Origin: Paramicrosporidium saccamoebae KSL3
Lineage: Eukaryota > Fungi > Cryptomycota
Direction of reading: 5' to 3'
Length of the DNA: 12,664 nt
NCBI GenBank assembly: GCA_002794465.1
Contig: MTSL01000198.1
Location: 2,155-14,818 of the forward strand
The notes beneath the pieces are model-generated. The model was not told the origin of the DNA. It saw only the letters and a list, made by a program, of their open reading frames with translations, and made no database searches. The position numbers and the translations under genes are program-made. This document shows, piece after piece, positions 1 to 5,565 of the stretch. The number at the start of each line of letters is the position of its first letter. The stretch's first letter is position 1.

Positions 1-75
1 ATTAGCAGTAAACAGACCCCCCTTCCCGTCCATACTATTTATCCCCACTACGCAACAATACAACAGCCTACTTAC
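1..75 (-). repeat. Dispersed structured intergenic element, copy 1 (truncated by window edge)
   Basis: Minus strand reads GTAAGT (75-70) ... TGTTGCGTAGTGGGGATAA (from 57) ... GTTTACTGCTAAT (13-1). It shares the TGTYGCGTAGTG core with 2852-2863 and 5410-5421, and GTTYACTGCTAAT with 5459-5471. Confidence 0.7.
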
Positions 76-521
76 AGTTACAGTACGGTTCCGTGTCAAT
101 TACTGTTACATAGGGTAGAATGTCTTTTGTAGGGCAAAATATTTCATCTGATCGTGCGTCAAGTAGAGGTTATCATCTCTTAAACGCGGACCGGCCCACC
201 GCGTATCACCAGTGATTCTTAATACAATATACTCTTTCAGAAACTAGGTTACTGAATCCATGCGACTTAAATTGGAAAACCTCGTGCATCATTACTCATA
301 CTTGGCGTCTAGATTCGGGCTGCCAAACCCGCTGAAAAACTACCACCCTCTAACCCGGCCCCAATCTGGACTCAATACATATACAGTGCAGGTCCCTTCT
401 ACACTCGATAAAAATCTTAAAAATTAACTCAGATTCTAGATAGACTCGGATCTTGAGGGGTAAGTTTTGATTAAACGCTATTCTGAATCATTTATAAAAG
501 CAAAACTTTGTTGTATTCGCC

Positions 522-2762
522 ATGACCGCTACTTTTCGAAAAAGTCGAGTTCGTGCACGACGTGGGAGCAAAACCTCGTCGACGAGAGAGGATGTTGCCA
601 CGAGAACGGACACTGCGTCTTCTAGACCCGACTTTTTCACCCCGCCATCTCCCGAACCCAATGCAGTATACAGCTTCATTGAAGATTGGAATCGAGGAGC
701 AATACCATCCAATGCCCGGATCTTGACCTTTTTGAATACTTGGAGTCGCTCCCCAGTGCTTTCCGGAGATAGCCGTCTTTCCCCCGCTGGGCAAGCTCTT
801 GTCGCTGATCTTCGATCGTTGGGAGACATCTTTGCACGAGTCGTCAAGGAACGCAATAGCGACGAGTTGCTTCAACGCTTTGTGGGACATTTGAGATTGG
901 CCGGTCGTGTTATCAAGGGAGGCACTCGTAGTGGCAGATTGACACTCATAGAAGATGTTCCACGCCAACGCCGCGTCAAGATCTTTGGCCGACGTGACGC
1001 CCAAATCCGATCTGAAGTCAGTACCCGTCGTCAGTCCGTCCGCCAAGATGCCCGAGACTTGTTCTCCGCTGCTCAGCTCATTCTTGCATCTACTGATTTC
1101 CGAAATGTTATGATGGAAGTGCAGAAACTGGTGAAACGAGCCGTCGACCTACGGCAGCCCTCTGAGCCAAAAGTCCCAAATACAGAACGAACTACCAACG
1201 TACCTTCAAGTACAGAGCCGACTACCATTGATGAGACCGAGTTGCACAAAAGACTGGACAAGACTGCCCAGGAAATTTCCGATTTGAGACGTTCAAGTCC
1301 ATTCACGTTTTCTCACAACGAGACATCATTCCGTCACTCTGCTACATTTCAGGAACAATCTGACATGTCACGACCGTCAGTGGAAATTTATTCTCCCCAT
1401 GGAAAAAGAGTAGACGCCAAGGATACAGCGCCAACTACAACAACTCCGATGACATCGACTCTCCCAACTGCGTCGACTCTTCCGACGTCATCAACCTTAC
1501 CACCTACACACACCACACCAGCTACACCTACTGAAATCGATCTGCTGCTTGATGATGCCCGTGGCTTGTTCAGGAAACTTGCAGGCAACAAAGAGTTTCG
1601 CAAGTCCATCTCTGGAATTTGGCTGATTGTGACAAAATGGCAGCGCGAGGCATCTTTACTTCCCGGCACAGTTTTGCCTACTGACATGGTCTACGACGCC
1701 AACTTTGCAGCGGCTCAACAAGATCTTTTGCAGCTTGCCGAGAGATTTGCTGGCGGAGCGTCTTTGAAACCGCTTCTTGAGTCCATAAATAACACCCGGC
1801 ACGAGGCGCTGGAAGATTACGAACTCAAAGATTTCCTAATGGACTGGCGTGCCTTTTTAAAGATCTGCACCACAGACCCCGACTATTTGGACCACGATGA
1901 ATATCGTCGTCGAGGCCGTTTCTTGTTGGAGCGAACCACTGAATACTCAGAGAGCCGATATCGTGCCCTTTTTCAGCAGAACATTGACAGTTGGAACAGC
2001 TTTCTCACCGGCTGGCAGCAGGACAAGCTGACCATGGAAATTGGAAGTGTCTTTCAGCGCATTGTCCGTGATATTTTTGGCCAAGAAGGCGGAATACTAA
2101 ACTTGGCTCGTGTGCAGTCCAGCCTAATCAGCGATCTTCGAGATGTCCTTCTCCCCAGTGTACTCCGTTCCATGTATGAACTCCCTATTCCGCATGTCGA
2201 TATTGTTCAAGGTCCCATGCATGTCTCCTTGGACAACATTGTACTCCCCGCTGCCCTCTTCACTCCTGCCGTCTTTGATCTGCAGACCCGCAGCTCCTTA
2301 CATATGACCCCGCGGGATCGTTTTCTCCGCGGGATCCGTCGTCGCGTTCCTAGCGAGGGGCGTTGGCGCAGTGGCGCACATCTTGGACTAACGGGCATGA
2401 AGGGTGACATTCCCAATGTTCAATTTGCCCTCGATCGAACCACATGGCCGAAAATTAGGGACCAAGGCACATGTGATGTCCGTTTCGGCGGGAAGGGCCT
2501 CTCCATAGACTTGGATGTTGCCACTGACATTTCTGCAGCCGAAAGGCGCTTCCACATTGAACCAGTCTATGTCGGCGTACGGGTTGATCGCATTGCCTTA
2601 AAGTTCTACAACGTCCAGCATGACACCTTTTTTGCCCTCATGAAGCCCTATCTGCAGAGCATGATGAAGACCCGATTGGAGCGCGCCATGTGTGACAAAA
2701 TTGTCAAGTCTATTGCTTTTATAGACTCAATGGCCAGTCGGATTGCGAAAACTGCCGTATAA
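522..2762 (+). CDS. Fungal DUF4449/DUF5923 (HAM1-like) family protein, 746 aa, probable BPI/TULIP-like C-terminal region
   Basis: Long ATG-initiated ORF. Motifs recalled for this family: GAIPSN, KERNSDELLQRF, LAERFAGGASL, DLRDVLLP...LPIPHV...LDNIVL, and PKIRDQGTCDVRFGGKGL. Family call is from memory, not a search. Confidence 0.7.
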   Translation: MTATFRKSRVRARRGSKTSSTREDVATRTDTASSRPDFFTPPSPEPNAVYSFIEDWNRGAIPSNARILTFLNTWSRSPVLSGDSRLSPAGQALVADLRSLGDIFARVVKERNSDELLQRFVGHLRLAGRVIKGGTRSGRLTLIEDVPRQRRVKIFGRRDAQIRSEVSTRRQSVRQDARDLFSAAQLILASTDFRNVMMEVQKLVKRAVDLRQPSEPKVPNTERTTNVPSSTEPTTIDETELHKRLDKTAQEISDLRRSSPFTFSHNETSFRHSATFQEQSDMSRPSVEIYSPHGKRVDAKDTAPTTTTPMTSTLPTASTLPTSSTLPPTHTTPATPTEIDLLLDDARGLFRKLAGNKEFRKSISGIWLIVTKWQREASLLPGTVLPTDMVYDANFAAAQQDLLQLAERFAGGASLKPLLESINNTRHEALEDYELKDFLMDWRAFLKICTTDPDYLDHDEYRRRGRFLLERTTEYSESRYRALFQQNIDSWNSFLTGWQQDKLTMEIGSVFQRIVRDIFGQEGGILNLARVQSSLISDLRDVLLPSVLRSMYELPIPHVDIVQGPMHVSLDNIVLPAALFTPAVFDLQTRSSLHMTPRDRFLRGIRRRVPSEGRWRSGAHLGLTGMKGDIPNVQFALDRTTWPKIRDQGTCDVRFGGKGLSIDLDVATDISAAERRFHIEPVYVGVRVDRIALKFYNVQHDTFFALMKPYLQSMMKTRLERAMCDKIVKSIAFIDSMASRIAKTAV
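1452..1505 (+). repeat. In-frame 18-bp tandem repeat (3 units) encoding TSTLPT/ASTLPT/SSTLPP
   Basis: Units acatcgactctcccaact / gcgtcgactcttccgacg / tcatcaaccttaccacct lie within a Thr/Pro-rich linker. Confidence 0.75.
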
Positions 2763-2846
2763 ATCCTTGTGTAATCTTTATAGCCCGAATAAAACACGAT
2801 CCAAGCCCGCCTCGTCCCCATCCCTGTTATTTTTATTGTTGTTGTT

Positions 2847-2955
2847 GTATGTGTCGCGTAGTGGAGATGATACCACAAACTTTGTCAGGCGGAGAGAGAC
2901 GAGACGGTGCCCCACTATTCAATCCTCTACATCACATATGACATGACCAATCATC
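2847..2955 (+). repeat. Dispersed structured intergenic element, copy 2
   Basis: GTATGT (2847-2852), TGTCGCGTAGTG (2852-2863), ATACCAC (2870-2876), GGTGC (2906-2910), TCAATCCTCT (2919-2928), CTACATCACA and GACCAATCATC (2945-2955) are collinear with the same blocks at 5401-5565. Confidence 0.8.
2945..2955 (+). promoter_or_regulatory. CCAAT box (GACCAATCA) upstream of the karyopherin gene
   Basis: Matches the NF-Y/HAP consensus RRCCAATCA, about 30 nt before ATG 2980. Confidence 0.4.
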
Positions 2956-5322: not shown

Positions 5323-5376
5323 AACAGGTATTTTTTGTAAGCCAGAGATAAAGGGTCTGTTGATGGGTGAACAGTT

Positions 5377-5382
5377 TTTATT
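5377..5382 (-). terminator. Putative AATAAA polyadenylation signal for the ISC1-like gene (overlaps ATTAAA on the plus strand)
   Basis: Plus-strand TTTATTAAA also occurs at 7025, downstream of H2B. This site is about 225 nt past the ISC1-like stop. Confidence 0.35.
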
Positions 5383-5400
5383 AAAGTATATGGCTTCTTT

Positions 5401-5565
5401 GTAGGTAGCTGTCGCGTAGTGAAGGGATAATACCACGAGCCAAGGCATGCGGAAACCCGTTCACTGCTAATCTTGTAGTAGTATCGGTGCACACTTCACT
5501 GTCCTCAAACACTCAACTAATCAATCCTCTGCCTCTGCCTCTACGTCACAAATAGACCAATCATC
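5401..5565 (+). repeat. Dispersed structured intergenic element, copy 3 (longest)
   Basis: GTAGGT (5401-5406), TGTCGCGTAGTG (5410-5421), ATACCAC (5430-5436), GTTCACTGCTAAT (5459-5471), GGTGC (5486-5490), TCAATCCTCT (5521-5530), CTACGTCACA and GACCAATCATC (5555-5565). Confidence 0.8.

Follow-up and report, generated by a model that had tools for sequence, protein, structure and literature searches.

A repeat family in intergenic spacers

The window analysed here is a stretch of 12,664 nt of Paramicrosporidium saccamoebae KSL3 DNA, corresponding to bases 2155–14818 (forward strand) of contig MTSL01000198.1 (52,498 bp; GCA_002794465.1). P. saccamoebae is an intranuclear parasite of amoebae that belongs to Rozellomycota, and its 7.3 Mb nuclear genome (accession MTSL00000000) was described as >76% genic with only 0.53% repeats, mostly simple ones (PMC5701793). 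The open reading frames (ORFs) of the window are long, almost intron-free and eukaryotic and encode HAM1-like, HEAT/importin-like, Exo_endo_phos, histone H2B, R3H-SUZ and Methyltransf_28 proteins. Three of the intergenic spacers carry a related sequence, and comparison over the contig revealed that they belong to a lineage-specific family of interspersed repeats that are short, modular and missing from the annotation. Here we describe the family, its architecture and distribution and its absence from a syntenic relative, and weigh the possible origins of the element, among which a non-autonomous mobile element fits best.

The most constant part of the element, its 12-nt head TGTYGCGTAGTG, occurs exactly three times in the window, at 46–57 (minus strand), 2852–2863 (plus strand) and 5410–5421 (plus strand). 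Shuffled sequences gave an expectation of 0.10 occurrences and none of 200 shuffles reached three, thus the shared 12-mer noticed in a preliminary description of this DNA is real, and so is the purine-rich, GAT-containing stretch that follows each occurrence. That description regarded the 12-mer as a conserved core, but the similarity is not limited to it: copies 1 and 3 can be aligned across approximately 200 nt, and homology within the family spans 85–390 nt.

The scan for further members covered the whole 52.5 kb contig. Additional intergenic sites were first picked by the 8-mer GCGTAGTG, and a sequence-only covariance model was then built from five copies and run with filters off over the entire contig. 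The contig contains seven copies in total, comprising five strong matches (34–101 bits), which are the copies used to build the model and therefore match by construction, and two long degenerate ones, each retaining head and tail; the model found no other match in the 52.5 kb. In the coordinates of the contig record, the copies lie at 2036–2211 (copy 1, minus strand), 5006–5090 (copy 2, plus), 7564–7704 (copy 3, plus), 20551–20679 (copy 4, minus), 31482–31711 (copy 5, minus), about 38594–38952 (copy 6, minus) and 42744–43130 (copy 7, plus, with the head GTCGCGTAATGG), and their lengths are 85, 129, 141, ~178, 230, ~358 and ~387 nt. Four additional copies on the same contig are in line with the expectation that more would be found.

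All seven copies are intergenic, while spacers make up only 17% of the contig, which gives a probability of 4e-6 (0.172^7) for such a distribution. Of the 23 spacers in the first 48.6 kb, seven contain a copy, as do seven of the 18 spacers with a length of 200 bp or more; the final 3.9 kb of the contig adds two spacers and no copies. Both orientations and all spacer types are represented, since copies 1 and 7 lie between divergent genes, copies 2, 5 and 6 between tandem genes and copies 3 and 4 between convergent genes. The orientation of the copies relative to neighbouring transcripts proved to be uninformative, because only the tandem spacers can tell, and there one copy of three (copy 2) is in the sense direction, copies 5 and 6 being antisense to both neighbours. 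Comparison of the aligned copies detected no conserved ORF, because the indels differ between copies. Excluding the window, where the family was ascertained, the contig has four copies per ~40 kb; if this contig is typical, the genome-wide number, as extrapolated from this single contig, would be several hundred to ~1000. Extrapolated likewise from this one contig, the share of spacers with a copy corresponds to roughly 700–1000 copies, or 1–2% of the genome.

Absence of the family from a syntenic relative

A syntenic but distant relative was found via the HEAT protein in Logan assembly SRR28204431 (contig 4344, 95 kb), which apparently represents another compact Rozellomycota-like genome. The gene order HAM1–HEAT–Exo–SUZ–MT28–kinesin is kept in this contig, and the proteins are 27–33% identical to those of P. 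saccamoebae (33% for Exo_endo_phos). Neither the model nor the head had any match in the relative, and 22 kb of it contained no dispersed repeats. The spacer between its HAM1 and HEAT genes is only ~50 bp long and its HEAT and Exo genes overlap, compared with spacers of 217 and 284 bp in P. saccamoebae. This contig also has overlapping convergent genes, and its introns follow the pattern GTAAGT…ACTAAC…TAG.

A closer relative (76–77% amino acid identity) is represented in Joint Genome Institute (JGI) metagenome 3300042204 by contigs that cover only spacers which are also empty in P. saccamoebae, and the same applies to the spacers covered by a contig of JGI sample 3300063079 (47% amino acid identity to the query protein). 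The ten matches in JGI metagenomes were all due to chance and none fitted the model; there was no match to the family in GTDB genomes, and the four matches in IMG/VR were all chance.

Architecture of the repeat copies

The head TGTCGCGTAGTG matches at 11–12 of its 12 positions in all seven copies and is followed by two to three purines and GAT-R-AT. Next come a purine-rich central block, GTCAGGCGGAAA, arm 1 (C(C)GTTCACTGCTAAT) and a block CTAGAATAGTAT.GATACACATCCCACTRTCCTCAAAYACCCA, inside which arm 2 (CCCACTRT) is located. The tail consists of ACTAATCAATCC, one to three CCTCTR units and ACGYCACA, beyond which four copies run on with (A)ATAG(A)CCAATCATCC. Each element carries one to three inverted, head-like arms (CCACTGC, CCCACTRT, CCTCTACGYCACA), and arm 1, arm 2 and the tail are all inverted imperfect copies of the head (GCAGTGG, ACAGTGGG and GTAGAGG, respectively). 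The 5′ half of the element is purine-rich and the 3′ half is pyrimidine-rich. The variants differ mainly by indels, and the length variants have common ends: copy 2 lacks the middle part, the tail of copy 1 is duplicated, and copies 5 and 7 share an internal segment of ~60–70 nt that is absent from the short forms. The closest pair, copies 1 and 4, shows 88% identity in aligned columns.

Only the 5′ part of copy 1 lies in the window (1–57, minus strand), with the head TGTTGCGTAGTG at 46–57, arm 1 GTTTACTGC at 5–13 and CTGCTAAT at 1–8. The copy extends to the left over a 10-N scaffold gap to record position 2036, which brings its total length to ~178 nt and places its long-range partner ATCCCACTAT outside the window. 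Assembly gaps are to be expected where a repeat has many copies, and one within this copy agrees with that. The window is bounded by scaffold gaps on both sides (L001 2145–2154, 10 N, on the left, where only ~2–3 nt are missing as judged against copy 4, and record 14819–15025), and a further gap is found at record 26566–26729.

Copy 2 is the short, internally deleted form (85 nt; 2852–2936, plus strand; 33.7 bits, E 7e-10), in which the head (2852–2863) is followed by arm 2 CCCCACTAT at 2910–2918 and the inverted tail CCTCTACATCACA at 2924–2936. Its extension TATGACATGACCAATCATC (2937–2955, plus) is common to copies 3 and 7 and to the first of the two tail units in copy 1; this extension resembles a CCAAT box, and its end lies 25 nt 5′ of the ATG at 2980. 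Copy 3 (141 nt; 5410–5550, plus; 100.3 bits) has the head at 5410–5421, arm 1 GTTCACTGC at 5459–5467 and arm 2 CTTCACTGT at 5494–5502, and its 3′ half contains CAACTAATCAATCC at 5514–5527, CCTCTG/CCTCTA hexamers at 5526–5544 and the inverted tail CCTCTACGTCACA at 5538–5550, which is followed by an extension AATAGACCAATCATC (5551–5565, plus) homologous to 2937–2955. Copies 2 and 3 also have TCAATCCTCT, CTACRTCACA and GACCAATCATC in common. The tail of the degenerate copy 6 (CGATCCTCTACGT, minus strand; L004 16798–16824, record about 38594–38620) overlaps the last two codons of a 133-aa ORF without a Pfam domain and provides its TAG stop.

The 5′ boundary of the element is uncertain, because the upstream flank of copy 3 (5354–5409, plus) shows weak similarity to those of copies 1 and 2 and also belongs to a second, separate repeated motif. 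This motif, GTCTGTTGATGRG…ATTAAAG.AT.TGGC, occurs with 73–74% similarity at window 5354–5404, just upstream of copy 3, at record 1360–1398, downstream of a MepB-like gene, and at record 15483–15533, in a gap-containing spacer. It could be a 3′-end signal or another repeat.

Termini and a probable mobile origin

The head and the tail form an imperfect inverted repeat of 13 nt (TGTCGCGTAGTGG versus the reverse complement TGTG(G/A)CGTAGAGG), which matches at 9–11 of 13 positions in copies 1–4 and is weaker elsewhere (7/13 in copy 5 and 4/13 in copy 7), and the minimum-energy folds pair the head with the tail ends. The 5′ terminus is TGTCG or TGTTG in six of the seven copies and the 3′ arm is (T/C)CACA in copies 1–5. 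TGTNR…YNACA termini are the pattern of gypsy long terminal repeats (LTRs) and of Ginger transposons, and Ginger2 produces 4-bp target-site duplications (TSDs) at RTATAY targets (PMC2836005). When the 3′ end is set at ACA, two of six copies show perfect 4-bp flanking repeats, TATG/TATG in copy 2 and TATA/TATA in copy 4, and random placements in the real spacers reach at least two of six with a probability of 0.00025. These repeats are possible, though unproven, target-site duplications.

We consider a partly decayed non-autonomous mobile element with integrase-type ends the best explanation of the family, a reading that we favour without regarding it as secure. The ancestral element would have resembled a miniature inverted-repeat transposable element (MITE) or a solo LTR with TGTNR…YNACA ends, as in elements moved by retroviral-type integrases. 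It would have been copied into intergenic spacers, the sole places that this compact genome tolerates, and the copies would later have diverged by internal deletion, duplication and point decay. Both transposition as the means of spread and the type of the enzyme are suggested by these features, and the head may be a putative protein-binding end that was kept intact, possibly by the host now. Among the three readings offered in the preliminary description, that is, a structured non-coding RNA family, an introner-like family and a small non-autonomous mobile element, the last one accords best with further copies in both orientations and in every spacer type, with length variants that have common ends and with the absence of the family from the syntenic relative.

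The family resembles MITEs in being short (below ~800 bp), non-coding, multi-copy, present in both orientations and confined to gene-poor gaps, as well as in the inverted repeat between its ends, the length variants formed by internal deletion and the repeated subterminal copies of the end motif. It differs from them in that the inverted repeat is only 13 nt long and imperfect, with two fixed differences between the ends, and in that the 3′ arm may not be terminal; moreover, TSDs are seen in only two of six copies, fold-back stability is not marked and no autonomous partner is known. With gypsy solo LTRs and Ginger2/TDD elements it shares the TGTNR…YNACA termini and the possible 4-bp duplications at TATA/TATG-like targets, but the terminal inverted repeats (TIRs) of Ginger are ~50–180 bp long compared with the 13-nt ends of this family, and no internal gag-pol or integrase copy was seen on the contig. 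A size of 85–390 nt is also very short for an LTR, and internal inverted arms are not an LTR feature. Bacterial REP/BIME, Correia and ERIC sequences offer an analogy only: they are likewise small palindromic spacer units of compact genomes, found in both orientations and in modular combinations, but they belong to another domain of life and are mobilized by other enzymes (RAYT etc.), and no homology is implied.

Several observations weigh against a mobile origin. The flanking 4-bp repeats are absent in four of the six copies, and copy 4 lies in a TA run or microsatellite. Approximately 20 nt beyond ACA are common to copy 1 (first tail unit) and copies 2, 3 and 7, which means that the 3′ arm may be subterminal and the 3′ boundary further out, and this would void the TATG duplication of copy 2; similarly, weak similarity between copies is detectable upstream of the head. 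No autonomous partner or full-length LTR element is known, and the genes of the contig are devoid of transposase, integrase and reverse transcriptase Pfam domains. A gene is bracketed by copies 2 and 3, which lie in direct orientation, but it is a conserved syntenic host gene. The repeat content given in the genome paper is very low and mostly simple (0.53%; PMC5701793), and the evidence comes from one contig. Finally, the head is far more conserved than the rest of the element: it survives in copies 6 and 7, the interior of which barely aligns, and 13 of its 14 CpGs are retained, compared with a tail CpG that has turned into TG or CA in four of the seven copies.

The conserved head and a possible regulatory role

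Such conservation of the head is not predicted by neutral decay of dead copies and points to function, suggesting that the head is under selection now or was so recently. It could be a putative transposase/integrase binding end in masters that are still active or a site used by the host. The latter would suit a host cis-regulatory or chromatin module, in which clusters of putative protein-binding sites would serve as promoters, terminators or boundaries; such a module may have been exapted from a mobile element. Beside the conserved head and its retained CpGs, this interpretation accommodates the location of five of the seven copies 45–470 bp from a start codon, the CCAAT-like box of copy 2 ending 25 nt before the ATG at 2980, and the heads of copies 5 and 7, which lie 85–86 bp from a divergent ATG; the inverted repetition of the head-like motif within each element is also seen in many clusters of binding sites. 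The sites would be the head (with ACGCG on the other strand), the CRE-like TGACGTAG in the tail and the CCAAT-like GACCAATCATC and ACTAATCAATCC, all of them with a putative resemblance to known factor motifs. Nevertheless, copies 3 and 4, both well preserved, are located between convergent genes, where a promoter is not needed, and neither the orientation of the copies nor their distance from adjacent genes is consistent. Furthermore, the other 16 spacers contain no isolated head, and the syntenic relative SRR28204431 has the same genes without the element. We therefore regard a regulatory module as unlikely, though still to be taken into account.

A bolder version, which we consider rather improbable, is that the family was retained by the host and that the 12-nt head with GAT-R-AT is the putative functional site, being either the 5′ end of a strand-specific small RNA that folds by alternative head–arm pairing or the binding site of a lineage-specific factor that marks gene boundaries in this compacted genome. 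If this were true, an early-diverging fungal parasite would have intergenic punctuation elements of a new class.

Pairing potential of the arms and the structured RNA hypothesis

The inverted arms raise the question of whether the family encodes strand-specific structured small RNAs or RNA-level cis elements, with helices, possibly alternative ones, between the head and either arm or the tail. In gap-free homologous extracts 90.7% of the head–arm 2 cells were paired and two columns showed compensatory change (GG/CC in copies 1, 2 and 4 versus AA/UU in copy 3, and A–U in copy 5), and the covariation score was 0.319 versus 0.214 in shuffles, a value reached by 8 of 500 shuffles. However, this signal rests on three cells, probably representing two events, and 5–25% of unconstrained alignments reach such a level by this method. 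The head–arm 1 pair was also mostly paired (88.9%), but its covariation equalled that of shuffles (246/500), and the head–tail pair (78.5% paired) showed no change on both sides. Consequently, the inverted repeat between the head and two internal arms that had been described as a covarying stem exists, while compensatory change is confined to only two columns.

The strand polarity formerly deduced from the G–U pairs turned out to be uninformative, as the nine paired positions of the head comprise six G, two T and one A; with an invariant head so rich in G and T, nearly every transition within an arm will produce a wobble pair there, regardless of selection, and the excess of wobbles follows from this composition. 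TATA-like A/T stretches located 10–30 nt upstream of the head in several copies would agree with transcription of RNA, but the other data offered little support for a structured RNA family. The check for a known RNA class was negative at the copies, as Rfam gave no match there in a search of the window (E up to 1) or of copy 4 by itself (181-nt query, E up to 10), and a gathering-threshold Rfam scan of two other loci returned only tRNA-Glu. Minimum free energies did not surpass those of shuffled sequences (z-scores of −1.13, −0.98 and +1.19 for the head strand, and of −0.73, +0.63 and +0.96 for its complement), and RNAalifold gave −0.48 kcal/mol on the MAFFT alignment without any compensatory pair. 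Furthermore, the copies contain no Sm site, kink-turn (K-turn) or T-run, a family of about a thousand members, as extrapolated, would have no parallel among RNA genes in a genome of 7.3 Mb, and the family is absent from the syntenic relative SRR28204431. We judge an RNA family to be improbable.

Specific RNA classes fared no better. The head resembles the 5′ end of U4 small nuclear RNA (snRNA) and CUGCUAAU resembles U4 stem I, an idea that came from the short stretches UUGCGYAGUGG and UGCUAAU, but no copy had a match to Rfam RF00015, an AAUUUUUG-type Sm site or a GA/GA K-turn. The copies differ from U4 snRNA and from tRNA boxes alike in lacking an Rfam match, Sm site, K-turn, cloverleaf and T-run, and they are too many and too divergent. 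C/D or H/ACA small nucleolar RNAs were also rejected, since the C-box-like AGAUGA is found in copies 2 and 6 and CUGA only in copy 4, that is, they are not conserved. Hammerhead and other ribozymes had no Rfam match.

Comparison with introns and RNA polymerase III units

Introners can be transposons with TIRs and TSDs that carry one splice site, and they are defined by copies acting as introns within genes (PMC9860276). The element has several features that invite this comparison, as it is short and repeated, possibly of the TIR/TSD type, and contains CTAAT motifs and a pyrimidine-rich 3′ half. An introner-like element or introns in untranslated regions (UTRs) would use ACTAAT as the branch point, the CCTCTR units as the pyrimidine tract, an AG just past ACA (found 1–5 nt beyond it in copies 1, 3, 5 and 7) and a GT in the flank. 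The branch-point-like CTGCTAAT is indeed present in copies 1 and 3, and the donor-like hexamers GTAAGT (70–75, minus), GTATGT (2847–2852) and GTAGGT (5401–5406) exist at the positions previously noted, so that copies 2 and 3, counted from the hexamers, begin 85 and 79 nt past the stops at 2762 and 5322, respectively. However, these GT(A/G) hexamers precede the heads by 5 to 21 nt, do not align among themselves and are not consistently matched in the other four copies, so they are best read as chance occurrences in a G/T-rich flank.

The host introns required by the reading frame are 29–30 nt long and have the form GTAMNN…CTAAT followed by 3–5 nt and TAG, as exemplified by RPS13 (GTACGACATCCATCCCGACTAATGGTGTAG) and by the kinesin, AAA and 880-aa genes. 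An intron of 100–400 nt with a branch point at least 30 nt from the AG would be unlike these ~30-nt introns. None of the seven copies lies in a gene or annotated intron, although genes constitute 83% of the contig (had insertions into genes been tolerated, P would be 4e-6), and copies 5 and 6 are antisense to both neighbours. An introner origin, as proposed in the preliminary description, thus appears highly improbable, and taken together with the RNA analyses, there is no good evidence that the repeat family is a structured RNA gene or an intron.

A further resemblance concerns tRNA genes, as the head is similar over a short stretch to TRGCNNAGTGG. In a tRNA-derived short interspersed element (SINE) or RNA polymerase III (Pol III) unit, the head would be the A box (TCGCGTAGTGG versus TRGCNNAGTGG) and GTTCACTGC, 42–47 nt downstream, a weak B box. 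The head fits the A-box consensus at 10 of 11 positions, and GTTCAYTRC at a distance of 42–47 nt suits tRNA geometry; in the tRNA-Glu gene of the contig itself the A box reads TGGTCTAGTGG. This gene, tRNA-Glu(CTC) at L002 6442–6513 (plus strand), is the only tRNA of the contig and has a T6 terminator directly 3′, which makes it a local yardstick for Pol III units. Measured against a Pol III unit, the copies fall short in several respects: ARAGORN and Rfam detected no tRNA-like fold at them, their conservation begins only 2 nt before the “A box” with no acceptor-stem or leader homology, the B box lacks A58 in every copy and also C56 in copy 1, the elements do not end in an A-rich tail, six of the seven copies are not followed by a T-run, and copy 5 contains an internal T5. 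A SINE or Pol III unit is accordingly very unlikely.

Neighbouring genes and tandem repeats

Just left of the window lies the MepB-like gene mentioned above (PF08877; L001 1435–1863, minus strand). Its best named homologues are from Streptomyces and other bacteria (~50% identity) and a 77%-identity orthologue is present in JGI metagenome 3300042204, so by sequence the Paramicrosporidium lineage appears to have gained it from bacteria. Two gene models of the window deserve comment. The 702-aa SUZ protein in GenBank (7809–10235, minus) spans two ORFs separated by a 177-nt spacer with stops, one coding for a secreted, polysaccharide deacetylase-like, Lys/His/Gly-rich protein of 403 aa and the other for a 345-aa R3H-SUZ protein; the syntenic relative has a gene for each, and the fused model is therefore likely to be an error of annotation. 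In the HEAT/importin-like gene the deposited model includes a 43-nt intron at 5155–5197 (plus; GTTGAT…TTCTAACAG) and a stop at 5203, giving 726 aa, and an uninterrupted ORF runs from the ATG at 2980 to 5322, giving 780 aa.

The spacers of the window also contain two tandem arrays, an 8-nt unit ACGTATCT in ~8 copies at 7611–7681, upstream of the H2B gene, and a 21-nt unit ATATTAATCCGGGTCTATCAG in ~5 copies (also scored at period 81) at 10297–10445, between the SUZ and Methyltransf_28 genes. For the exact H2B protein a single locus was found by look-up. Elsewhere on the contig, L004 2098–11725 encodes two tandem families of secreted orphan proteins with signal peptide-like N-termini, one pair being 513 and 533 aa long and 59–71% identical over two aligned blocks, the other 519 and 574 aa long with internal repeats. 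Their homologues were found only in two JGI metagenomes, and the two families are lineage-specific candidates for parasite–host factors, as judged from the sequences.

Implications for genome evolution

The repeat family occupies about one third of the spacers of the contig and explains part of the difference in spacer length from the syntenic relative. It breaks the assembly, as seen from the gap in copy 1, and overlaps predicted UTRs and promoters, thus it matters for annotation, and its conserved head is a candidate for a putative protein-binding site. If the contig is typical, the repeat content of the genome was underestimated, and, with a non-autonomous mobile element as the favoured origin of the family, mobile DNA would have survived or even expanded while the genome was being reduced, in a lineage that is close to Microsporidia.

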